64,000 bases of DNA from Lepidodermella squamata. Lineage: Eukaryota; Animalia; Gastrotricha. Shown in pieces: positions 48,901 to 64,000 of the stretch. The notes under the pieces are model-generated. The model saw only the letters and a program-made list of their open reading frames with translations, had not been told where the DNA came from and searched no databases. The stretch lies in the NCBI GenBank assembly GCA_047495785.1, contig JBLDXI010000009.1, forward strand, positions 4,960,001-5,024,000, given 5' to 3'. Numbering within the stretch: the stretch's first letter is position 1; the number at the start of each line of letters is the position of its first letter. The position numbers and the translations under genes are program-made.

Positions 48901-49578
48901 GTTTACCGTTACATCAAGCACACACGGCCGGTTTTTATTACATCCACATGGCAAATATATGGCTCTGAGCTATGAAGAATAAGTCTAAGATACCGCAATT
49001 TTTGAGGCGATTAAAAATGAAATTTTTAGAAGGAAAACTGTCAACAATTTCGACTTACCAAGTCCGATAAAATTCCAGGGCGTCCTTCTGGCGAATTTCA
49101 TCGAGCAAGTAAGCGGAAAGTAGACGAGCGCAAAAATGATATATGACAGGTAGTAGAAGTACCAGTGTACGGATAAAAACTGGTGAATTTCGTCCACCGC
49201 ATAGAAAACGCTGCAAATCGCAGTCGTAACCAGCAACTGGCAGGTTAAAATGAGAAACACCTTGCGAATGAAGCCGAGCCGGATGCTGCGGTCTGTGAAT
49301 GAAAACGATTTGTTATCTTTACCAGTAATTTCAATTTCAGCGGGGTGAATGAGAGGCTGCTGAGCTTGTTGCTGAGGCAGTTGCGGCTGCTGTGGTTCTG
49401 GATATATTGAAGTGTCTACATTCCACCCGACAGGTTGAGTCAGAGGCTCCGAATTTTCTTGAGATCCATCCTGAAGTCCTTGAGATATATCCTGTGGAGG
49501 CTTTTCTAGGCTACTATCGAGAGTTGCAGCATTGGGTTCCAAAGAGTATGGAGGTGGCGATCCAGTCGTTGAAGCCAT
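45957..49578 (-). CDS. Lifeguard/TMBIM protein, copy B (exons 49578-49059, 46390-45957)
   Basis: PPPY, FTDRSIRLGFIRKVF, QTRIDFT, WDVQ...LSPENYVFGALAIYMD. Same intron position, expanded to ~2.7 kb by transposon relics. Confidence 0.88.
46860..46959. repeat. Perfect hairpin, ~41-bp arms
   Basis: TTTAACAAGAAAATTAGCGACTTCGATTTTATTTTCAATTT followed by its reverse complement after a short loop. Confidence 0.9.
47151..47908. mobile_element. Foldback MITE with ~209-bp near-perfect arms made of CATCTA subrepeats
   Basis: 47151-47359 is the reverse complement of 47700-47908 with few mismatches. Confidence 0.85.
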
Positions 49579-50023
49579 AGCCTAAGACTAAGCTAACTTA
49601 AGAACTAGAGCATGATTTCCCAAAAATAAAAAAATCGCAAAATATCAAAACCGACAGCATTTCCAACCAATCGAGTATTTCGTTTAAAAAACCTAAAAAT
49701 ATAAAAAATATACGCGTAATTAATTTCAATCACACGGGATTATTTTCCAATAATATCGAATAAAATTCAGAAAAAATAGCAGGTCTGTTTTGCCTCTGGA
49801 AAGACAGCAATAATAATAATATTTCAAATTTTGATTGAGATTGAACAACCTTTGAAAATACTGATTGTATAATACCGAGAAAAAGGTAATTTCGCACCTC
49901 ATAAAATATCAGGATGGAAGATATGAAAGCAGTAAAAGGTCAACAAGAATAGAGATTGCACAAATTTGAGTAAAATTGTTCAGATTGTCACCGAGGTATT
50001 TGTCACTTTTTGATGCGCATTTT

Positions 50024-50918
50024 CTAGCCACGTCGGGTTTTGATGTTGAGAATCGCCAAAATTACGTAAATAATATCAAAATAAACTTGAACAGCTCCAA
50101 AAATGTGGTGATCGGGCGACAGTTCATACTCGGCCCTGCCAACAATCACTTGAATATCGAAAACGAGGTAAAAAGCGAAGATCAAGGCGGCCAAAGAGCC
50201 GAAAAACACAACGTAAATTCTGTCGAGGCCAAACACGTAGAACCAAAGTGAGCAAGCAGCGATGGTTAGAACCAGCACGACGATTGAACAAGAAATTAAC
50301 GCTGTACGAGCGGTAAATTCGTGTCGAGTTTGAGTCGCTAAAACAGCAAGAACAACCGCGATAATTGTATCGATTCCAAAAGCGATCATTATCCATTCTA
50401 TTTTACATAGACCAGTAATTGCAGCCATCAAATAGGAAAATGATAGGGTAAAAAGACCTGGAAACATATTGTCACTATAATTTGAACTTCTTGTCAATTT
50501 TCTTAGAATACTCACCAAATGCAACGTAGTTTGACAAAGCCTTGTGAAAGGAGTGCCGAAAACGCATCAGACCGACATAAATGAGCGAAAATCCGACAAA
50601 CCCACCGTAGTAAAGGAACATATTGTTTCTCAAAATATCCCCGTAGATGTCAAATGCGTAGAACATTCCACAAGCCACAGTTGTAATAAGCAACTGAGCG
50701 GCCAATGTCAAAAGAACTCGTCTTACAAAATCCAGCTTAATTTCATGAGATGGAAAATAGGATATTTCTCTTGGCCTCATCTCGGCTGCCTCAGCGCAAC
50801 CGGGTGATAGCAACTCATGTCTATCCAGCGAGTGATCAGCCTTCGTAGTCTTGATTCGAGGGTCCGCCAATATTTTAAAATTGACTGGACGTGGCATTGG
50901 CACAATTTTCGCAGCCAT
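50024..50918 (-). CDS. Lifeguard/TMBIM protein, copy C, divergent (exons 50918-50516, 50457-50024)
   Basis: IKLDFVRRVLLTL, QTRHEFT, FDIQ...LSPDHHIFGAVQVYFD. 58-nt intron at the shared position. Open frame intact. Confidence 0.85.
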
Positions 50919-51304
50919 AAAAGGAATATTTATAAAATCCTAAAAAAAAACAAAAATTGAATTAACACAGTATAAAAATTTACTCATGGTGGCACAAGTT
51001 TTGTCAAAACGACATAGAATATTTTCCGGTAATAGCAAAATATATCGACTAGACTCGCGTGAAAACAACCGAACACTTTTTGAGAAAATACTTTTAGGTA
51101 AAATAAAGTTAAATCTACTTTGATGATGAAAATAGGTAAAATCAACGGATCTCATGTACGGGCGACAGATCGTCACTTCACGATATTAACGGAGCCACGC
51201 ACGATCGATTTTTAATCGAACGAACGGCTATTAACAGCCGATTTGAGACAAGCAAACTTTGAAGCTGGGGTCAGAAAAATAATCATATCGCAATTTTTCA
51301 TTTC

Positions 51305-52344
51305 TCAATTGCGGCGACCAGTAATATTGAGAAGCATGAGGAAAATGTAAACAACATCTAGATAGATCTGAACAGCGCCATAAACGTATTCTTCGGGCGA
51401 TAATTCGTACTTCTTTCCGCCAATGACTTTCTGGACATCATAGACCAGGAAGCATGAGAAAACAAAAGCGCCAATACCGCCGTAGATGACGAACATTGCT
51501 CGGCTCCAGCCGGCTATCATGCCCCAGATTGAACAAGCCAGGCCGGTAAAGAATAATACCAAAACTAGGCAGAAAAGGATTCCCGAGCACATTGTGAAAT
51601 CGATCTTAGTTTGCCATGCGAAGATTGTCAAAGAAACTGTTAGAAGAACCGTGATTCCAAAAGCGATCATAACACTCTCGACGTGGTAGAAGCTCGTCAC
51701 GGTTGCCATCATGTATGACATCGCCAGTGTCAAAATAGCTAAAACAAAATTACTTATACCACAACAATTTAAGACATAGGTATTAACTTACTCAAGGCTA
51801 TGTAATTCCCTGGCGTGCGTCGAGCACATCCACGGCAGCAAACCAGGCAAAAGTAAGTAACAAGAAATACGGCATATCCAACGTAATAAAGGTACGAGTG
51901 GCGGATCAAGAAGTATCGCACGTCATTAACCGCATAGAAAACTCCACAAATCAACGTTGTAACAAGGAGCTGCGCTGTCAAAATCAGGAACACTTTGCGA
52001 ATGAAAGCCAATCGAATGGCTTTGTTAGAGAAGGCAAACGATGCGCCTTCGCCGTTCTCCGCGTTAACAATCAAAGCTTGCCCAGCCGAATAGTTGACGT
52101 TGTGACCTGGATAGCCGCCACTATTCTGGTTTGGATAGCCACCAACATACGGAGCTTGGGGCTGTCCAGAACTAGGATATCCCATGGCGTAATTGGAGTT
52201 ACCTTGCATTGGATAGCTTTGAGTTCCAGAATGCATCGGGTAAGCTCCAGGTACAGGTTGCCCCATTGTTTCGGGACCTTTCCAGCCGATTTGCGGAGCC
52301 GCTGAATATGCGGGAGGCACTTCGTCTTCGTTCTTTGAATACAT
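51305..52344 (-). CDS. Lifeguard/TMBIM protein, copy D (exons 52344-51792, 51738-51305)
   Basis: PPAY, FSNKAIRLAFIRKVF, QTKIDFT, YDVQ...LSPEEYVYGAVQIYLD. 53-nt intron. Confidence 0.92.
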
Positions 52345-53091
52345 TTTCAGATCTATCGCTCCTATCAGTGAAGTAAAAATAAAATAAGATAAATCAGTAG
52401 GAGAAAACGTTAATCATGAGAAAACGCCAATCATGAGCCAACTACATGCAACTCGTGATAATCAGGTAGGATTGAGCAAAAAATAAAATGCAGCGGTTCC
52501 AAATCAATTAATAACATAACAGAGGGATAGATAGTAAGTGACGCAAGGCTATATAGAATTTCTAAGTTGCGTGGTCAACAGTAAGCACTTGCTTTCGTTC
52601 TCGATTTCCCGTTCGATTTCTCGTCTTTTTCAGCTTTTTTTAGGGCTTTCCGATGATTCATCCAATATAATATGTGTCGCCTTTTAATTAGCAGCTCGCC
52701 GTTTATCTGAACATGATATTTTGCATATTATTATACGTGAAAAGCATTTTGTCGAGAATTTTCTGAATCGCTGACGTATCTGATCATCCGCCGTAAGGGA
52801 TGCGGGATCGCCTTAACTACAGCTTCTGCCTTTGCCTCCGTTTTCTGCAGTCTCGCTTCACGGCTAGATGGCTTGGTGAATGGCTTTTTGAGCCCTAGCT
52901 TTGTCATTGGGAATGAGGAGCTATTCACGAAAAACGAAGATTTCTTGTATCTAGTGCAAGGTGCAAGCCTTGCTGAGTTTTTATGAAGCCTTCTCAATTT
53001 TAATTTCTTTTTATTTAGATAATTAACTCGGTTCCATTGCCGCGACTCTTATGTGAGTTCTAGTGATCAGTGAAGTGACGGCTCGTATCGC

Positions 53092-55209
53092 ATGGGAATG
53101 CTTGTTTTTGCGGCCCTGCTCGTAGCCCTGTTTTTCGGGCATTACTTCCATCTCCAGTACCTCGCCGAGAAAGACAAACATTTCTCTCACCTGTCATCTC
53201 TTGAGCGAGAACTATCGTTTCGCTCCGAAATGGCAATGTATTACTCTTACTTCAAGGATCTCATCAGCACGCCTAATTTTGATGAAAGTTTCGGGAAAGT
53301 TGTATATGACAATATTACCGAATATCCGGACACGATAAACGCAATTCAGCGATTTAATATCTACCCAGAAATCGCCCTTGCTCTTTTGTACCGGTCGTAC
53401 ATCTGGCTTTGCCAAACTTTCAACCTGCCGCTTATGGAGTGCTGGCAAGTTGAGCGGGGAGGCGACATGCCACCTGTTACAAGCTGCGAAGGATTTGGAG
53501 AACCGAGTTATTTCTATATTACCTTGGTATTCTTCGTCAATGGGTTCACCCCAGTCATAATCTTTCTATTCGGATATTTCTTGACAAATGGATCCAAGTT
53601 CGGAGGGTTGATAGCTGCAAGCAGTTTCTTCTTCAATCACCGAGAATGCACTCGAGTTATGTGGACTCCTCCATTGCGGGAAAGTTTCGCGTTTCCCTTC
53701 ATTCTACTACAAAACTTGTTGGTCGAACGGTGCTTGAGAGATCTGAATCGCCAATCGAATTCGCGAATATTTGGTCTTATAGTTTGCAACGTGGTTTTAC
53801 TAATTTGCTGGCAATTCTCACAGTTTGCCTTATTGACACAAGTTTTTGCCTTGAGTTTCCTGTACGGTGCTGGTTTTTTCGACAAAAGTTTTTCGACACT
53901 ATTCACTATTTTATCAACTCATTTTGCTGGAATTATTATCGCTGCAATTCTACTTTTCGGGAATCGGCTATTGCTGACGTCTCTATACACGGCTTCTTTG
54001 CTCAATTTTTTGTTTCTACTACTGGGACACAATCATACGAAAGGTCTTGGATTCCCACTCAGTTTCTTGTTTCGCTGCAGTTTGATGCTGGCTGGAACGT
54101 TTTCAGCTCGTCACTTCTTGGCGTCGAAAATATTCGCTGGAGTTGAGGACGATTCACATATTTTGGATTTATTGAAAACGAAAATAACTCCTTCGTACAA
54201 AACGTTCCATTCTCAGCTGTACACTTGCGCTCCTGAATTCGATTTTTTGGGGCTTAATGCGATTTTATCCATGTCAAAGACGTTATTATTACCTCTTGGA
54301 GTTCTAATAACGATTCGATTTTTGTTCAAATCAGCGATTGAGAAGAAAGTTGAGCCGTTTTTGGTTTATCATTTCCTTCAACTTGGTGCATATTCTGTTA
54401 TGGCAATATTTATCATGCGACTAAAACTGTTTTTCACGCCTTTTCTATGCATAACTGTCTCAACTTTGTCCGAATTTTGGGCGAAAAAAGACAGTGAAAA
54501 GTCGAAACTTTCCATACGTCGTGGTGCTGTTGTTTTGCTATGCATTTCTATGATCGCGTTGGGTGGTCACAATTTACGAGACGAATTGGCGGCGGAGAAT
54601 GAGTTCGCAAACTGGCCGCTTGAATCGCTAATTAATTGGATTAGCAGTCATACGCGTGCGACGGACGCGTTTGCCGGCGCTATGCCGACAACGGCCGTGA
54701 TCAAACTCTCAGCACAGCGGCCTATAGCTAACCATCCGCATTATGAAGATGCGAAAATGCGTAATCGAACGATGGATGTGTACACAATTTACAGCAGAAA
54801 GCCTCTGTCTCAAGTAAGTCGTTGATTATTACTTGAATCTTTGCCTTGCTATCACTTATCTCTAGAGTAAAGTAAAGATAATTGAAAAATTGACCAATGA
54901 GATTTTTTATTAATTTCACGAATTGATTGTAAATTTTATCCTCAAATTTTAAAAATATTAAATTATTTTTATTAAATCTAGGTTCATTCGATTTTTCGGA
55001 GAATCGGCGTGAAATATGTTGTAGTCGAGACAATATGGTGCGAATCTCACCGCCGCGGCTGTGCTATAGCCGAACTCTACGATTTGATTGACCCTGTGAA
55101 TCGCGAATACGAACCGGCCTGTTTCAAGCTTCTCGAAGGCAAAGCTGAGCCGTATTTCAAACTTGTTTTCAAAGAAGACCCGTATTATTTGCTCAAAGTT
55201 ATGCCTTGA
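53092..55209 (+). CDS. DPY19L1: C-mannosyltransferase DPY19 (exons 53092-54813, 54982-55209)
   Basis: FSHLSSLERELSFRSEMAMYYSYFK, RFNIYPE, ECTRVMWTPPLRESFAFPF, FAGAMPT...NHPHYED. Confidence 0.93.
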
Positions 55210-55371
55210 ATTGTTATTGCAATTTTTCCATTTTTATCGTGCCATTTCTTCCGTTTATGATCTGTTTTTGCATGTTTTGCTCAATTTTATGTATCGCTTT
55301 TGATAGTTTTATTATTAAAATCACGCAATTTTCAAGAATTATCACATTTTTTTTAGAATTTAATATAAAAA

Positions 55372-57797
55372 ATGGCATTGCGTGGGGTTCGAGTGTTAGA
55401 AATGGCTGGCTTAGCTCCTGTGCCATATTGCGCCATGGTTCTGGCTGATTTTGGAGCCGAAGTCATCAGAATCGACAAGGCTAGAGATACCGAGGTTGAT
55501 ACGAAACTAGGCCGAGGCAAGAAGTCGATTGCTGTCGATTTAAAACACCCGGATGGGCGAAAACTTGTGACAAATCTCGCGGCTAAATCTGATGTTTTAA
55601 TCGAACCATTTCGAGCTGGAGTTATGGAAAAATTGGGTAAGCCATCAATATTCTGAAAATAAAAAAAAATGGCTTCACTGTTATTAAATTATCGATAGAA
55701 AATTCGTCTTGAGTGCAAATTTAGCAGTATAACGAGCTAATTGAATATTCCACGCCTCGTTTCCCGTGGCGTAAAAATTGACGCGTTCTGATTTTATTTC
55801 TGACAGCTCTTTATAAATCGAGAGTTTCTAAAAAATTTTGGGACGACCTCTAACCTAAACCTGATTGATTTACTTCAAACTTTATCGTTATTACTGACAG
55901 GTCTGGGCCCAGAGCCGTTGATGAAAGTTAACCCGCGATTGATTTACGCCCGGCTAACTGGTTACGGCCAGACCGGCCCATTGAGCAGTCACGGTGTGTT
56001 GATTACTACATACCATTCATAGATAATCGCTTAATTACATTCATAAATCAGCCGGCCATGATCTGAATTTCCTCGCGTATTCCGGCCTGTTATGGGCGTT
56101 CGGCTCGCCGCAACACCGCCCTAAGCCACCCATCAATTTAATGGCCGATTTCGCTGGCGGGGGTCTGTTGTGCTCGTTCGCGATTGCTGCGGCGCTGTTT
56201 CAGCGAACCAACTCTGGCCGCGGTCAGGTTTTAGAGCTGAGCATGACGCAGGGCGCGGCTTATGTCGGCAGTTGGCTGTGGCGGTCGCGGCAATCGATGA
56301 GTTTTGTATGGCCGCAGCCTGACCAGCCGGGTACGAATTTGTTGGACGATGGTCAGGCGTTTTATACGACGTATAAGACGAAAGATGGGGGTTATGTCGC
56401 TGTTGGCGCGATCGAACCGAGATTTTTCAAGGCTTTATTGAAAGGTGAATCATTGAGTCAATGAATTCAAAAAATATGGACGGTACCTTTGTCCGCAGCA
56501 AATTTCTATTTTTTTCAATATGGACGTTTGATAAAAAGCTAATCACAGTTGATAGCTTGATTCGAGAGCTATCGTTTGGCGCTAATGTTGCCAAACGAGC
56601 CCTTTTAAAGTTTCACCAACAGTGTGACTTGTGAGACAAAAGTAAGATGACTTCAGAATTTCCATCATATCCCCAAATGAGTCATTTTGAAATTAATGAG
56701 TTGGGTTTTTTTTCGACAGCCCTAATCCTCATCTATCAGAATAAGTAGGAATCCCAAGATTTGGAGAAAAATTGCATATGCTAGAAAGAAACTAAAGAAA
56801 TTTTCTGTGGAAAAGAGTATGAATTTGCTGCGGGTAGGTATTTTTCAGAAATATTATTACGAAAACGGAGAAAAATCATGTGACATATATGGAAAATGGA
56901 AAAACAGGGTGTCTCTGTAACGATAGGGAGTAATGTGATAAGTGAAAAGAAGAAATTCTGCGACGATGTCTCATTTTATGGCCTGAGGCTCTTTTTAATG
57001 CCATGGAAATCCTAATCAACGATAAAAAAAGTCGTAATTTTCAACTAAAAAACGCCGAAAATTGCGGATCATCAAACTTGGGGATTTTTATAGTTAATCC
57101 GTTGTTTTGAACTTTTTTTAGTTAAAATTTTGAGGAATTAACTTTTGCTTTTATTGGTCAATACTTTGATTGTCCATCTTCAATTCATGAGCTCATTCCA
57201 TAGGGACATGAAATGCTAGTTTATGAAAAATTAAATTTAGTCAAAGTTTTAGAAGGCTCTGAAATATCATGGAGTAAACGCCTGTAATATTCCAGTTAAT
57301 TACCTTTCTAAAGCTGAGGAGATCTGAGAAAATTATCTAAATATTTTTGTTATTTTTCAGCTCTCAAAATCGAAAACCCTGACGATTTCGATCAATTTGG
57401 CGATCAAAAGCAGCTTCGCGACCGATTTGCGGCAATTTTCGCGCAAAAAGACCGCGACTACTGGGCTCAAATCGCGAGAAACAACCCAAATGCCTGCCTA
57501 TCACCTGTCCTAAGCCTCGACGAAGCGCCGCATTTCGACCACGCTAAAGCAACAGGTGCTTTTATGAAACAGCCCGAAGATTTGGGCACTGGCTATGAGC
57601 CGAGTCCTGTGCCTAGAAATCTGGCTAGTTTTGGCCCAGATTCGTTGGAGAAATCGCCCGATGACCCAGTTTTAGGGCAACACACTCGAAGTGTCTTATC
57701 ATCCATCCTTGGTCTTTCGAATTCTGAGATTGAAGATTTAAAATCTAAGGAAGTTATCGAATGCGCTGATTCTTCAACTGCCCAAGCCAAACTTTGA
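55372..57797 (+). CDS. AMACR: Alpha-methylacyl-CoA racemase (exons 55372-55636, 55901-55993, 56052-56444, 57361-57797)
   Basis: [55 protein letters not shown]-terminal PTS1 AKL. Confidence 0.95.
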
Positions 57798-57862
57798 TGA
57801 AATTCCAAATAATTTATTTTTATTTAAATTTTCATTATTTTAAATAGATTTTATTATTATAA

Positions 57863-58186
57863 ATGGGATCTTGTTTATGCCCATCTGCGAGTCGAACGCC
57901 TCATGTAATGTCGAGAATTTACGCCCCGGCCGGTATGAACCCGCCGCCTTACCCGGTCCAACAAGGCCCAGTGCTGCATAATTACTACCCAGCATCAGTT
58001 CCAGGTCTCATGTCGACTCAAACCTACATAGTCCCACCGCCTGTGGTTTCATACAGCAGCTATAACGGGTCGGGTTTTTTAGAAGGCGCTCTCATAGGAG
58101 GCGCTCTAGGCCTCGGAATGGGCGATCATTGTATATCTTTCGGCAGTCTGTCGCTCAATAGCGTCGGATCGATAGGCTCGTTTTGA
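57863..58186 (+). CDS. Orphan 107-aa Pro/Tyr-rich protein with MGSCLC acylation motif, PPPY and Gly-rich hydrophobic tail
   Basis: GC-rich ORF in AT-rich flanks, AAATGG start context, upstream acceptor at 57847, coherent motif content. No family recognised. Confidence 0.55.
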   Translation: MGSCLCPSASRTPHVMSRIYAPAGMNPPPYPVQQGPVLHNYYPASVPGLMSTQTYIVPPPVVSYSSYNGSGFLEGALIGGALGLGMGDHCISFGSLSLNSVGSIGSF

Positions 58187-58827
58187 TACTCGACAACGCC
58201 GGGACGAAAAATATTGCGATAATTATCGACTAATTGATCAAATATCCGCTGTGCCTCACTAATAGAGCTAGTCGGCCATCGAAAGAGCCATCTCAATTTT
58301 TCCATTTCATGTTTTTTCCATGCAAATAATATTGAGCGAGCCAAGGATATTCGGTAACGATGAGACTAAATTGTACCTAAAAAATTGTAGAAAAATCAAA
58401 CAAAATTCTTGAAAAAAAATGAATATTGAATTAATGCTTGAGAATAGTTTTGCATTTGATGGATCTACCATTCCAATAATTAAATCGATAACCCAATTTT
58501 TACCGTAACTTTTTCTTCCCTTGTTCGGCAATATTTTGCCGCGAATCTTCGTTTTTTTTACAGCATTCGAGTTCTCATCTTATCAAATGCGAATATTTAA
58601 ATTACTTCCTCAGCCTTTGGGCTCTTCCGTTGTTTTTCAAACTCATTCCTCTTTCTTAATTTGCGCAATTTTTTATTCGGGCTAAAACTGTTTGCTTTAA
58701 TTGTTGTATTAATTATGCCTCAATGGATCTCGTCAGTATTTTTCAATGAATTTTTTGGTAATTTTGATTACATTTTCTTGCAATTTTAGGTGTTTTTTAA
58801 TACTTTTTTATTCGTTTTTTCCGAAAT

Positions 58828-59139
58828 ATGAGTACAAGCGATGACCCAAAATCAGATGAATGTCAATTGGTTAAAGTTCACTTTCGGCTATCAGACGGTT
58901 CCGGCGTGATGCGAAATTTTGCCGCCGCCGAAAAGTTGCAAAGCTTGTTCAATTTTGCGCTCACCCTGCGAGCTGGCGCCCGCTCTTCGCCGAATTCATT
59001 TACCCTAGCGTCGATGAACCCGAGGCGCAAATTTACGCGAGCCGATATGAATTACAGCCTAGCCGAGCTGGGCCTTGTCCCCGCTGCCTTGTTGCTCCTT
59101 ATTCCAGCCACGCCCGAGCCGCAAAAATCGGTCGACTGA
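58828..59139 (+). CDS. Stand-alone UBX-domain protein (103 aa), paralogous to the UBX domain of the adjacent UBXN4
   Basis: VHFRLSDGS...F...EKL...NPRRKFT..DM..SLAELGLVPAALLL aligns with IQFRLPDGS...TPRRIFT..DM..SLAELALAPSAVLL. Confidence 0.8.
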   Translation: MSTSDDPKSDECQLVKVHFRLSDGSGVMRNFAAAEKLQSLFNFALTLRAGARSSPNSFTLASMNPRRKFTRADMNYSLAELGLVPAALLLLIPATPEPQKSVD

Positions 59140-59756
59140 TGCGAATTTCAGCTCATTGGATGCGAAAATTTCAAAAATATGTAGCATTGGTTGTTTTCTA
59201 CTCGATTTTTCATGTGTTTATTTGTGACCCCTTTTTACCCTGAAAAATGTGCCAAATTTTGCTCACACTTTATGATCCTTATTATTATTATTATTATCAC
59301 AATTTATTGAGTCAAAAAACGCCTGTTTGAGCGGTGCTTTATAATATTTTATTAAATATTAACTTCCTAATGATTCGTGGCCAAAAATTCAAAATGAGTG
59401 TTAACATTTTGCATATCAAAAATTTGTTGTTCGGACACTATATTTAGGCAATATTCTTTCACTTTCACGGCGAATAATCTCCAATTTATTGCACACAATT
59501 TTCAATTTTTCATGTGTGAGTGAGTGTTTTTTTTGCGGATAATTTTGACATTTTACGATTGAACTGGTGAGGTACAACGGAGTTTCTTGAAATATGCTAG
59601 TCTCTGATAAATTGTGATTATTTATACATATACGACGATAAATTTCGAGTTTTTTGTGTGAGTTTTTTGCAGCACTTGACTTGGGAGAAATAAAATTCAG
59701 TGTTCAATTTTGTTTTTTCAATTCTTAGCTATTTTTTGTGAAATTATTTGATAAAT

Positions 59757-61311
59757 ATGAAGTGGCACGCCGGTTCAGTTGAGGAAGCAATTCGTGATAA
59801 AAATGCCAGTAAGGCCCTGCTCGTTGTTCATATATCAGGTACGAAAAATGAAAATTCTTCATAAAATGCGGAAAAATCATGTTATTCTTAAAATTAGACG
59901 GTGGCGCAGATTCGGTTGCTATGGACGCGCTTTGGGAAGCGACCGAAGTCTCAGACATTCCAGTTGTCGCCCTTCGCCTCACTGCTGGCACTCCGAGCTT
60001 TCAACAATTCGTCCAATTTTGTACGTCAACAATTTGTTATATTATAAAAAATAATTCAAAAATTTGGGAAAAATCCCTAATAAATATATCATTTTTGTAT
60101 TTTTAGACCCGGTCGTTGTCATTCCATCGGCGTATTTCATCGGTCTCGACGGCAAGGTGATTGAAATTGTCGTCGGTAAAAAAACGCCCGAAGAACTGCC
60201 AACCTTCGTCAACCGAGCCGTGGACGCGTTCAAAGGCGCAAATTCAGCACAACCCGCCCCATCGCAGCCTAGAAACGACCCACCACCGCCCGCTCGGTCC
60301 AGCCCACCTCGAGAGACTCAACCTGAGCCGGAATCTTCGAGCCAACCATCTGGTAATAGAGTGAGCTTACAAAATATTGAGCAGCGGCTAGAACGGGCTC
60401 GTCAAGTCGTTGCGCAGCGTGACGAAGAACGCGAGCGGCAGGACGAGTTGCGCCGGCGTAATATCGGCTCAGAAATGGCGAAAGCCCGCGAGGAAATCGA
60501 GGCGAAGCAACGCGAGGCGGAGAAGGAGGAGAAAAAACGGCAGAAGGAGGCGGATAAAATCTACATGGAAAAACTGCGCAAACAAATTGAGGAAGATAAA
60601 ATTGAAAAGGCGGCGCGTTTCAACGCTGAACGGCAGAAGGAGCGCGCGGCTCAGGAGGAAAAGGCGCGAAAACTGGCTGAAATTGAGGCGGAAAAACAGG
60701 CGCGAGATCAAGCTGCCCGCGCTTCGATCGCCAAAATTCAATTCCGCCTGCCCGATGGGTCGAGTGTTGTTCGCCAGTTCGAACCTAGCGATAAGTTGAA
60801 GCTAGCCCATGATTTTGCGAAAACGCTACTGCCATCTCGGAGTGGCGTAACTTTGACATCAATCACCCCGAGGCGAATTTTTACGAATGAGGACATGTCG
60901 CAGAGTTTGGCTGAACTAGCCCTGGCACCGTCTGCGGTGTTGTTGGTGCTGCGGAGCGGGGGTGACCCGTCACAGGGGCCGAGTCACTCGAGCGAGTCGC
61001 CTAATTTCATCTCGATGTTTGTCGCGTCGTTTTTCACCTTTCTGGCCACAATTTGGGCATTTTTCGCCAATTTCATCTGGGGCCAACCGGCGGTTCAGCA
61101 GCCGCCTGCTGCTGCTGCTGGTGCGAGTAACCCTGCCCCGCAAAATCGAGCGGCTCCAGGCGCTGCGTCTGGGTCCTCGCCCCAGAAACGGACAAGTTCG
61201 GGTGGTGGCGAGCCGCGATCGACTGGTAAGGTCTACCGACTGCATGATCTGAAGCGCGACGATGATGCTGATAAGGCGACGTGGAACGGCAATTCGACGA
61301 ATCAGATGTGA
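59757..61311 (+). CDS. UBXN4: UBX domain protein 4/erasin (exons 59757-59838, 59898-60020, 60107-61311)
   Basis: MKWHAGSVEEAI N-terminal thioredoxin-like region, coiled coil, UBX domain, hydrophobic hairpin and conserved C-terminal WNGNSTNQM. Confidence 0.93.
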
Positions 61312-61992
61312 AGAAAATGAAAAAATGAAATTTCACAGCTTAGTTACCAAATTTTGTTAAATCACTCAAGCGGAACGTTCTCAGAAAAATTCATAAACTT
61401 GGAAAAAAATTGAATAAAATAATATATTACGCGGTAAAATTGGAATTTTGTGGAATATTTGAAAAATTGTGACGTCATCAAGGAAATATTGCTAATTGCA
61501 AAAATATTTGTTGCAGCCAAATTGAATTTTTGAGAAATTTGAAAAATTGGAATGCTGTCATGTGTTGGAATTTTTCTGCGGAATGTTCGAAATAGATGCA
61601 ATCTGATAAGATTTATTGTGAATTCTGCAATTTGTCAATGTACCGCTGATGATAAACTGTGTTGAAGAAAGCGATCAGTCTTCATATTGTATCCATAGTA
61701 TTTATTCTCGGCTTCTTTTGCGAAAAATCGCGCTTAACATGTGAAATTATGTCCGCTTTTCTTGCCATGTTGGGCAAGGAACTTGATGTGGTTTCGAGAT
61801 GTGTCATATGTAAATCTTACAAAACTATGTAAAATGGATTTTTAAACAAACTTTGGTTCATCTCTCTCATTTTCGATCGAATAAAATAATTGAAAAATTT
61901 GTTGATTTAATTCGATTTTTTTCGCATTTGTTAAATAGGTGGTTTGGGCGAGTTTTGAAGAGAGGTTTTTTTTGGTAATTTATCCGGTGAAA

Positions 61993-64000
61993 ATGGCTAC
62001 CGCTACGGCTGCTGCGACGGGTTCGAAATTTGTGAAACTGGAGCGTATGAAGAATGTCTTGCTAATTGGGCTGAACCGAGCCGATAAGCGGAATGCAGTC
62101 AATCAACAGGTTGCAAGCGAGCTGACCGCCGCTGTTGAACAGCTGGAACGCGATGATGTCAGTTCGAATTTTTATCTGCTTTGAAACTAGGATAGGCATA
62201 GTATACTTAAAACAGTGGAGTACCCAACCTGTATTATTAAGGCCTCGGATCTTGCGCAGTATCTCGCTGGCTTCAAATCTAACCTTGTTTCCTAAAATTT
62301 CAAGTACGAGAAATATCTGTGTTTCCGAATGTAATTTTTTCTGCCGGTTTCCACTTTTTCCTCCTTTTCACAAGAAATTTTCACAAAATTCTGGCGACTA
62401 AGGAAAAATCAGTTTTGAAACAGGGTGGCTGAGCTAGCAGGTAAAATATAATAAAAGAGAATAATAAAAGAGACACAGTCTTAATCATCATAATCACCGG
62501 GGCCAAAGGTTATGAAGGTATCATCTTCGTGAATTCCAGCAAATTGAACGGCAGCAAATTTTCCTTGCGGGAGGATAGCCAATCCACGGTCTCGGCCCTA
62601 GGACGCTTGCGGTCATCTTGTGCACAAAAAAGCACATCAACACAGGAATTCGGTTTGCCCAGGTTTTTTGAGCGGCGATTATTGTGAATTTGTCGAATTT
62701 CGTCTATTCCTGAGGCTTTGCCGTTTTTTATATGGTCTATAGCGCTCTTTTTTCATCAATTGATATTCCTATTACATCAGAGTTTATATGCGTAATCTGC
62801 GAGAGGAAACGTCTGACTTCGATTGGGCCTTGCACGGTCGTAGCCCTCTTTACCGTTAAACCCTTGTAGCCTGATTTTTCAATTTTCAATTTTTCGTTTC
62901 ACTGAAATTTCGTTACGTCTGTCATGTGACCTGTTGTCCCTTGCGAGGCCGTTGGTTATTGCGGGGCTCGATTTTAACACAAGATATTGAAGTTGTTGTG
63001 CGGAAGGACGTAGAAACGGTGATGGAAGATATATTGGCCTATTAGGAAAGAGATATTTACAATACCGTTAGCGACTATCTGAGAGCCATTCGGAAGATTG
63101 ATAATGATCGTCGAACTAGCGTCGGTATTTTCTTGAAGCGTTATTCAAGAGGCAACCTCAGCTAAACCGGTGATTTTCGAGATGAAGATTTCATTGCTGG
63201 ACTTGCTTCTGAATACGCAACTTGGGGCGGTGACTTGGTCGAAGGAGTGGAAAACCACACTCGCAGCAGTATGAGTGACGATGACCGTTAGGTGTTGATT
63301 TATTGGCTTGCAAAATTTTCAACCCGACCCAGACCTGATCGCCATTCTTGAAGAGGACGGAGCTAATACCAAAGCCGAATTCGCCGAAAACAACAGAGGC
63401 ATTATTCATCTCTTCTGCTAAAAGGTAAAGGCCATAAGGGCAAAGCATTTTTCGATAGACGTCATCTGGAGGTTCTACTAACCCACGTACACGTATCGAT
63501 GTAGCACGAGAAATAATCATCTATAATAGAAATGTTAGGGTAGCAAGCCGATATTAAGCAGCCGGTCGCCGGTCTTCAAGAGTTCTGTCATCAACTCTGC
63601 GTTCTGGCCATTGCTTCTGAGTTTGAAATATGGTCAATAAGCGTTAGTGGTATCAGCCTTGGAAGGTTAGGTTAGCATCAACGAGATTAGGGTATGATAA
63701 CCGGAATCGTAACCCGTCGACTACAACTGATTAGCAAAACATGACTTCCTGTTCAAAAGTGTTGACATTCGCGGCCCAAATTCTGATTGACATGATTGAT
63801 TACAGCAATTCAAGGAACGCTAATAATAGGATTCGACAGAGTGATGCAACACGCCACCCATTCGGGGATGGTTTTTAGAGTTAGCGATCTGTTTTAATGC
63901 TCTTTAGATTTGTGTGATGAGCTTATGTTTCCTTTTTTAGGAATTGTCTGTCGGCGTGTTGTACGGCGAAGGCGGCAATTTCTGCGCAGGTTACGATCTG
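61993..64000 (+). CDS. Enoyl-CoA hydratase/crotonase family protein, 5' part (exons 61993-62157, 63941->64000)
   Basis: LIGLNRADKRNAVN...ERDD spliced in phase 0 to ELSVGVLYGEGGNFCAGYDL. Runs off the window. Confidence 0.88.
62692..62784 (-). mobile_element. Decayed LINE fragment, same family as 5377-5468
   Basis: Reverse complement reads SAIDHIKNGKASGIDEI and aligns to 5377-5468. Confidence 0.7.

Follow-up and report, generated by a model that had tools for sequence, protein, structure and literature searches.

A probable conserved operon-like run of genes from DPY19 to an enoyl-CoA hydratase in Lepidodermella squamata

In a 64-kb stretch of the Lepidodermella squamata genome (assembly GCA_047495785.1, contig JBLDXI010000009.1, positions 4,960,001-5,024,000, forward strand; hereafter the window), we found a run of genes that is probably a conserved operon-like unit. 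We give about an even chance (probability roughly 0.5) to the fuller reading that DPY19>AMACR>(orphan ORF)>UBX>UBXN4-like>enoyl-CoA hydratase constitutes an operon-like transcription unit that is old, conserved, and resolved by spliced-leader (SL) trans-splicing. An initial annotation had proposed such an operon. A five-gene order kept at ~60% identity without its flanks, the acceptors, the poly(A)-signal-like hexamers, and cDNA cover of one long spacer speak for that proposal; the short spacing on which it leaned is confined to the first two junctions.

RESULTS

Six co-oriented genes are separated by unequal spacers

All six ORF sets of the run lie on the plus strand (Table 1), as had been annotated, and Pfam backs five of them, the exception being an orphan ORF. 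The DPY19 gene has 650 codons with a single terminal stop, and its best named matches, in molluscs, arthropods, and vertebrates, are only 40-46% identical. The AMACR-type gene has 396 codons, and the UBXN4-like gene 470 codons with a single terminal stop and both intron positions in common with a relative, R1. The small UBX protein has relatives that are 62% and 68% identical; an exact-protein look-up returned no record for it or for the orphan ORF. Exon 1 of the hydratase matched Pfam ECH_1 weakly, and a tblastx comparison with the ECH_1 gene of R1 matched both exons.

Table 1. Coordinates of the gene run and its spacers (window positions)
Feature	Position	Strand	Details
Candidate trans-splice acceptor (TAG) of DPY19, the first gene	53017..53018	+	73 nt before ATG; 12/15 pyrimidines upstream
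DPY19-like C-mannosyltransferase gene	53092..55209 (exons 53092-54813, 54982-55209)	+	Pfam Dpy19, E 2e-157
Spacer 1, 162 nt	55210..55371	+	ATTAAA 55314-55319; acceptor AG 55355-55356
AMACR-type CoA-transferase gene, four exons	55372..57797 (55372-55636, 55901-55993, 56052-56444, 57361-57797)	+	Pfam CoA_transf_3
Spacer 2, 65 nt	57798..57862	+	AATAAT 57808-57813; acceptor AG 57846-57847
Orphan 107-codon ORF (initially annotated as a "PPxY microprotein")	57863..58186	+	GC island; cDNA contig
Spacer 3, 641 nt	58187..58827	+	ATTAAA 58479; AATGAA 58745-58750; cDNA contig end 58767; acceptor AG 58788-58789
Small UBX-domain protein gene, 103 aa, one exon	58828..59139	+	Pfam UBX
Spacer 4, 617 nt	59140..59756	+	ATTAAA 59351; AATAAA 59689-59694; acceptor AG 59727-59728
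UBXN4-like gene	59757..61311 (exons 59757-59838, 59898-60020, 60107-61311)	+	Pfam UBX, C-terminal part
Spacer 5, 681 nt	61312..61992	+	AATAAA 61413; TGACGTCA 61470-61477; AATAAA 61880-61885; acceptor AG 61937-61938
Enoyl-CoA hydratase gene	61993..64000 (exon 1 61993-62157; 1.8-kb intron; exon 2 from 63941, continuing past the window edge)	+	Pfam ECH_1

The gaps first reported between the DPY19 stop (55209) and the AMACR ATG (55372) and between the AMACR stop (57797) and the next ATG (57863), 162 nt and 65 nt, are correct. The accompanying description of very short spacers fits only two of the five junctions, because the remaining stop-to-ATG gaps are 617-681 nt. From stop codon to acceptor, the first two junctions span 147 nt and 50 nt, and here the upstream 3′ end necessarily lies very close to the next acceptor; in spacers 3-5 this would be so only if cleavage uses the poly(A)-like hexamer at the distal end of each spacer, 34-53 nt ahead of the acceptor. 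Two minus-strand ORFs (58126-58344 and 58307-58531) were considered as a gene interrupting the run and rejected because they have neither a family nor a codon signal. Elsewhere nearby, two Bax-inhibitor-like paralogues are separated by a same-strand gap of 386 nt.

The original argument that the spacers leave no room for promoters therefore holds for DPY19>AMACR>orphan ORF, where the stop-to-acceptor gaps are so small, and fails for spacers 3-5, whose ~600 nt could accommodate them. Co-transcription of DPY19, AMACR, and the orphan ORF is likely. A possible but rather doubtful alternative to one unit of six is that only these three genes form a true polycistron, and that UBX, UBXN4-like, and the hydratase have their own promoters in the ~600-nt spacers. 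Trans-splicing would there merely remove an outron, and the gene order would reflect an ancestral operon or slow rearrangement. Consistent with this, spacers 3-5 are similar in size to other gaps between same-strand genes in the vicinity, such as that between the Bax-inhibitor-like genes, and TGACGTCA is present in spacer 5. Each of spacers 3-5 also carries a canonical proximal poly(A) signal (AATAAA or ATTAAA) 102-293 nt past the stop; the 300-500 nt beyond it could accommodate a promoter. Furthermore, the rule by which chaetognath operons are called, under 250 bp (PMC12460157), would admit only the first three genes.

Five of the genes keep their order in a relative while the flanks do not

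In R1, the order DPY19>AMACR>UBX>UBXN4>hydratase is retained on a single strand; from stop to ATG, successive genes lie 131, 230, 419, and 190 nt apart, and the R1 proteins are 60% (DPY19), ~62% (AMACR), 62% (UBX), and 61% (hydratase) identical to those of the window. By contrast, R1 sequence on either side of this block (6.5 kb on the upstream side, 1.5 kb on the downstream side) gave no match in all 64 kb of the window, which places the start of the conserved block at DPY19; the order of five genes has been kept while the surrounding synteny has decayed. A second relative, R2, keeps UBX>UBXN4, 210 nt apart. The junctions corresponding to spacers 3-5 span only 162-210 nt in relatives, apart from the 419 nt at UBX>UBXN4 in R1, which argues against a polycistron limited to the first three genes. 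In R1, the counterpart of spacer 1 carries an ATTAAA, 44 nt upstream of a TAG immediately next to the ATG.

A scan of JGI metagenomes with a DPY19 alignment yielded 80 loci, none with AMACR, UBX, or hydratase. One Logan transcript (L006), with a DPY19 46% identical, was set aside as coming from another organism; it has no AMACR downstream.

Acceptor motifs and poly(A)-signal-like hexamers recur at the gene starts

The T-rich AG acceptors annotated before each start were all recovered as pyrimidine-rich TAGs, at 53018, 55356, 57847, 58789, 59728, and 61938. Across the window, R1, and R2, a TAG lies 0-73 nt before the ATG at 13 of 13 gene starts, and 12 of these have at least 10 pyrimidines in 15 positions. 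We scored acceptor strength by this simple pyrimidine count, which replaced an overfitted 24-position matrix built from 12 introns. A lone motif of this kind is weak evidence, because 71 comparable pseudo-acceptors occur in ~5.6 kb of local non-coding DNA (both strands) and 19-30% of control 80-nt windows are equally strong. The acceptor signal is significant only jointly, across 12 of 13 starts in three lineages.

A poly(A)-signal-like hexamer ends 34-53 nt upstream of every one of the five internal acceptors. For AATAAA or ATTAAA alone, the count is three of five, versus 7% of the 71 pseudo-acceptors (Fisher P 0.007); when ten common hexamer variants are counted, it is five of five versus 22% (P 0.001). 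The same hexamer test was positive at 2 of 12 cis-intron acceptors. Neither in the window nor in R1 did we find such a hexamer upstream of the DPY19 acceptor, as expected if DPY19 is the first cistron. The hexamers could instead belong to the branch-point region. As poly(A) signals, their presence ahead of every internal acceptor, including those of spacers 3-5, speaks against a unit that ends at the orphan ORF.

cDNA contigs cover a long spacer up to the next acceptor

We identified the RNA data set, X1, as cDNA because its contigs skip four of four introns, the GT..AG intron of DPY19 (54814-54981) and all three introns of AMACR, and because depth is zero in the DPY19 intron and at 56791-57190. 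X1 was examined as contigs, which carry no strand information and cannot prove a single molecule across cistrons. Holes occur even within DPY19 exons, so that a hole in X1 speaks for neither presence nor absence.

One unspliced contig (57906-58767) extends from the orphan ORF across the proximal ATTAAA of spacer 3 and ends 17 nt beyond AATGAA, leaving 22 nt to the UBX acceptor. This cover weighs against a separate unit beginning at UBX. The UBX gene itself has cDNA depth at 58791-58990, and the AMACR contig stops precisely at the acceptor position, 57847. At spacers 1 and 2, none of the X1 contigs listed bridges the gap, and the depth bins fit a single thin contig across it as well as two unconnected ones.

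We did not observe a shared leader among the contig loose ends listed at 55356, 57847, and 58789, with a hole at 57848-57905. The sole 5′ loose end among those listed, at 53061, is a library adaptor; it marks the start of the DPY19 contig, downstream of the candidate acceptor at 53018. A search of 52.3-64 kb with Rfam at a permissive threshold returned no SL RNA or snRNA, and the sole Rfam match in the window is a tRNA. Published leaders of chaetognaths and of the ctenophore Hormiphora do not occur in the window, which says little. We dropped an element in intron 1 of AMACR that had been suspected to resemble an Sm site, as it has no repeat elsewhere in the window.

The lack of a leader and of bridging RNA among the contigs listed, the DPY19 contig start, and the abundance of acceptor-like motifs would fit a compact genome without any operon, with one promoter per gene (at the short gaps inside the upstream last exon or 3′ UTR) and with TAGs that are chance or ordinary 5′ UTR intron acceptors, but we consider this improbable: the 50 nt from the AMACR stop to the next acceptor is too small for a 3′ UTR end, promoter, exon, and intron, the TAGs are kept at all starts in three lineages, the block is conserved while its flanks are not, and the X1 joints listed include no cis-spliced 5′ UTR joint to 55356, 57847, or 58789.

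An orphan ORF lies between AMACR and UBX

The orphan ORF coincides with a GC island (52-57%) that is AT-rich on both flanks, lies within the unspliced contig described above, and has a codon score that is weakly best in its own frame. It has no Pfam family and no homologues in a word search or in Atlas (best 0.84), and a full HMMER scan gave a single low-complexity match (E 5e-4) that is not a homologue. The ORF is absent from R1, where AMACR and UBX are 230 nt apart.

DISCUSSION

We favor a single operon-like unit, for which we infer one primary transcript that would be resolved by leader addition. Transcription would most likely start in the short divergent region directly upstream of DPY19. 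Each upstream message would then be cleaved and polyadenylated ~15-35 nt before the TAG acceptor of the next gene, and a spliced leader would subsequently be trans-spliced onto that acceptor. Spacers 3-5 show the same signal layout behind ~560-580 nt of presumed 3′ UTR; UBX, UBXN4-like, and the hydratase would likely be fed by read-through, with internal promoters possibly helping.

A more elaborate version of this reading is unlikely to hold in full. All six genes would be one polycistron in a lineage without described SL operons, with a poly(A) site ~15-35 nt before every acceptor despite ~570-nt 3′ UTRs. The orphan ORF would be a young cistron that arose between AMACR and UBX, in an intercistronic region of an ancient operon of five genes, and that borrows the transcription and trans-splicing of this operon.

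In C. elegans operons resolved by SL2-type trans-splicing, the intercistronic regions are ~100 nt long and contain a U-rich element, and SL2 serves as a dedicated leader. Our run resembles them in its co-oriented cistrons, in a poly(A)-signal-like hexamer ahead of a candidate trans-splice acceptor, and in an order conserved between species, although the DPY19 homologues point away from nematodes. Tunicate (Ciona and Oikopleura) and chaetognath operons are resolved by one non-specialized spliced leader. The run shares with these a head-to-tail arrangement of unrelated housekeeping genes and, as predicted from the hexamers, a short poly(A)-to-acceptor gap of ~15-35 nt; it differs in that three junctions lie behind ~570-nt 3′ UTR-like stretches, and leader addition is here a proposal. 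For comparison, the distance from upstream poly(A) site to downstream acceptor has a median of 1 bp in Ciona and is 31-57 bp in Oikopleura (PMC7986045), and it is 3 nt in the RPS14-PCNA operon of the chaetognath Spadella (PMC2481426); chaetognath leader genes are located in the rDNA (PMC12460157). In Trichuris-type operons, the median distance from one cistron to the next is 517 bp (PMC7986045), which resembles spacers 3-5, though ours are counted from the stop codon and theirs between gene annotations. Unlike in Trichuris, the distal poly(A)-like signal near each acceptor suggests long 3′ UTRs and not long intercistronic RNA.

An SL-resolved operon is in itself a well-known mechanism. Few animal groups have evolved such operons, whose origin, persistence, and uptake of genes are debated. 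Here, a five-gene unit has been kept over ~40% protein divergence in a lineage without close annotated relatives. The junctions of this unit grew from ~130-230 nt to ~600 nt, and an orphan ORF appears only in this lineage. If co-transcription holds true, the run would offer a compact locus in which to study how operons are conserved, how their spacers grow, and how a gene is born within one.

A run of six co-oriented genes, five of them in conserved order

Pfam assigned a family to five of the six coding units on the plus strand between 53018 and 64000, as the initial annotation had proposed, and the exon models of DPY19, AMACR, UBX and UBXN4-like translated cleanly. The "very short spacers" claimed for the whole run held for two junctions, where the stop-to-ATG distance is 162 nt (DPY19 to AMACR) and 65 nt (AMACR to the next ORF), exactly as described, but not for the other three, at 641, 617 and 681 nt. 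Spacers 3-5 are nearly equal from stop to acceptor and share no sequence similarity with one another.

Features of the run and its surroundings (window coordinates)
Feature	Position	Strand	Size	Hexamer upstream of proposed acceptor (nt, hexamer end to acceptor)	Remarks
Bax-inhibitor/TMBIM-like paralogues	48985-52344	-			tandem, two exons each
Candidate divergent ORF	52731-52997	-	88 codons		lysine-rich; 54% GC island; no Pfam family
DPY19	acceptor 53018	+	650 codons	none	Dpy19 C-mannosyltransferase; Pfam E 2e-157
DPY19 intron	54814-54981	+			
AMACR	acceptor 55356	+	396 codons	ATTAAA (37)	family III CoA-transferase type, Pfam; several exons
AMACR intron 1	55637-55900	+			
Repeated element, AMACR intron 3	56490-56990				inverted-repeat arms 56493-56516 / 56810-56833
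Orphan ORF	57863-58186; acceptor 57847	+	107 codons	AATAAT (34)	no Pfam family
Spacer 3	58187-58789		603 nt		stop to acceptor
UBX	acceptor 58789	+	104 codons	AATGAA (39)	UBX domain, Pfam
Spacer 4	59140-59728		589 nt		stop to acceptor
UBXN4-like	acceptor 59728	+	470 codons	AATAAA (34)	UBX domain, Pfam
Spacer 5	61312-61938		627 nt		stop to acceptor
TGACGTCA site	61470-61477				in spacer 5
Enoyl-CoA hydratase, first exon	acceptor 61938	+		AATAAA (53)	Pfam
Hydratase intron 1	62158-63940	+	1.8 kb		
ORF in hydratase intron 1	63191-63520	-	109 codons		no Pfam family found

A word search of ENA metagenome assemblies with the UBX protein recovered two relatives, R1 (loci L001/L007, L002/L003 and L008) and R2 (L005). 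R1 carries DPY19 > AMACR > UBX > UBXN4-like > hydratase on a single strand, with stop-to-ATG gaps of 131, 230, 419 and 190 nt, even though its proteins are only about 60% identical to those of the window. In R2, the UBX protein is 68% identical to that of the window, and UBX > UBXN4 is kept, 210 nt apart. The R1 genes upstream (a glycosyltransferase, a KH protein and a Tudor protein) and downstream (a fucosyltransferase) had no match across the 64-kb window; the conserved block thus starts exactly at DPY19. The best named DPY19 matches, 40-46% identical, were scattered over molluscs, arthropods and vertebrates, and the lineage is without close annotated relatives.

In both the window and R1 lineages DPY19 is the plus-strand member of a close divergent gene pair, the partner in the window being a candidate ORF. 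Just 21 nt separate this minus-strand ORF from the proposed acceptor of DPY19, and should the ORF prove to be a gene, the two start codons would lie 94 nt apart.

R1 lacks any counterpart of the orphan ORF, and its AMACR-UBX gap is too small to contain one. A word search, Atlas and a full HMMER scan of 1.84 billion representatives returned no homologue of it. It forms a sharp GC island (52-57% vs about 25-30% in the flanks), most of it lies inside a cDNA contig, and it is probably a lineage-specific insertion that is likely to be coding.

Acceptors and upstream hexamers

A pyrimidine-rich TAG was present at every acceptor that the initial annotation had named. A single motif of this kind carries little weight: 71 similar pseudo-acceptors occur in the non-coding DNA nearby. 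Across the three lineages, a TAG lies 0-73 nt upstream of the ATG at 13/13 gene starts, and at 12 of the 13 at least 10 of the 15 preceding bases are pyrimidines, a count reached by 19-30% of control 80-nt windows. Against a control rate of 0.3, a chance origin of 12/13 strong acceptors is very unlikely. The only upstream ATG between an acceptor and its start codon belongs to a two-codon ATG-TGA, in the leader of DPY19.

All five internal acceptors of the window are preceded by a poly(A)-signal-like hexamer. The two canonical hexamers occurred at 3/5 of them vs 5/71 pseudo-acceptors (Fisher P 0.007), and ten common variants at 5/5 vs 16/71 (P 0.001); 2 of 12 cis-intron acceptors had one. No such hexamer precedes the DPY19 acceptor in the window or in R1, which is the expected look of a first cistron. 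The same hexamer-then-TAG layout recurs in the 386-nt gap between two of the Bax-inhibitor-like paralogues upstream of the run, where AGTAAA lies about 38 nt before the acceptor. Alternatively, these A/T hexamers may belong to the branch-point region.

cDNA across the junctions

Two public sequencing runs contain this stretch: X1, which behaves as cDNA, and X2, which is DNA. The DPY19 intron and the three introns of AMACR, each with GT..AG borders, are spliced out in X1 contigs, and X1 depth is zero inside the DPY19 intron and across 56791-57190. A contig of the AMACR 3' end stops precisely on the G (57847) of the acceptor proposed there. Another (57906-58767), free of joints and mismatches, takes in the greater part of the orphan ORF and almost the whole of spacer 3, so that no untranscribed stretch is left between that ORF and UBX in which a conventional promoter could lie. 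It ends 17 nt past AATGAA and 22 nt short of the UBX acceptor, which fits a poly(A) site just 5' of that acceptor.

Among the X1 contigs listed, none joins a spacer exon to the acceptors at 55356, 57847 and 58789, and no leader occurs at these acceptors among the contigs and loose ends listed; a further 88 contigs, those of the AMACR and UBX starts included, and one loose end lie outside that list. In spacer 1, the mean X1 depth of 6.58 (55191-55390) fits a thin DPY19-AMACR bridging contig and two separate contigs equally well; depth bins show zero-depth holes even within DPY19 exons (e.g., 53407-53430 and 54270-54351). The DPY19 contig begins at 53061, joined to a 24-nt sequence that is not a leader and that we take to be a SMART-type cDNA adaptor. 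Its printed orientation is opposite to that expected of a template-switch 5' end. This start could be a true 5' end or a truncated cDNA, and does not imply use of the candidate 53018 acceptor.

Introns compared with R1

The DPY19 intron (window 54814-54981, compared with L001 6447-8366) and AMACR intron 1 are missing in R1, and both UBXN4 introns are shared, which indicates intron gain or loss between the lineages. AMACR intron 1 has cDNA depth (mean about 26 over 55636-55790, 12.2 at 55661) where the other introns have zero, suggestive of intron retention or of a transcript arising within it. The intron holds an AAATTTTGGG stretch, is not repeated elsewhere in the window and matches nothing in Rfam. 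In AMACR intron 3, the depth of DNA-run contigs rises from about 97 to 575-745 over a repeated element with opposite-strand contig joints and several loose ends; this element explains part of the growth of the intron to 916 nt, and the R1 intron at that position is far shorter. Hydratase intron 1, 1.8 kb in the window against only a few tens of nt in R1, contains a minus-strand ORF and GC-richer stretches here, and may represent either an element inserted at this place or a nested gene.

Discussion

The best reading of the run, to which we give a probability of roughly 0.5, is an old operon-like unit. From DPY19 through AMACR to the orphan ORF, the acceptors follow the preceding stops by 147 and 50 nt, too little for a separate promoter past the upstream 3' end; the simplest explanation is co-transcription combined with trans-splicing. 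For the three junctions after the orphan ORF, the same conclusion is favoured by their poly(A)-signal/acceptor layout and by the cDNA that covers spacer 3.

An operon limited to DPY19 > AMACR > orphan ORF is less probable but remains a serious rival, because spacers 3-5 each carry a canonical proximal poly(A) signal 102-293 nt past the stop, the 300-500 nt beyond it could house a promoter, and spacer 5 has an TGACGTCA site; the layout shared by all three downstream junctions and the transcribed spacer 3 argue against it. That every gene is monocistronic is unlikely: one gap is only 50 nt, the TAGs are conserved and synteny is confined to the block.

If the run is such a unit, the poly(A) site would lie about 15-35 nt from the acceptor, a distance similar to those in Oikopleura (31-57 bp) and Ciona (about 1 bp; PMC7986045) and in an operon of Spadella (3 nt; PMC2481426), and closer than in C. 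elegans (roughly 100 nt). Chaetognath operons have been defined by gaps under 250 bp, and chaetognath leader genes are located in rDNA clusters (PMC12460157). Published chaetognath and Hormiphora (ctenophore) leaders were absent from the window, an absence that is uninformative. Spliced-leader operons are an already known kind; the present run contributes a well-documented example of conservation, junctions of consistent layout and, within the unit, an orphan ORF.
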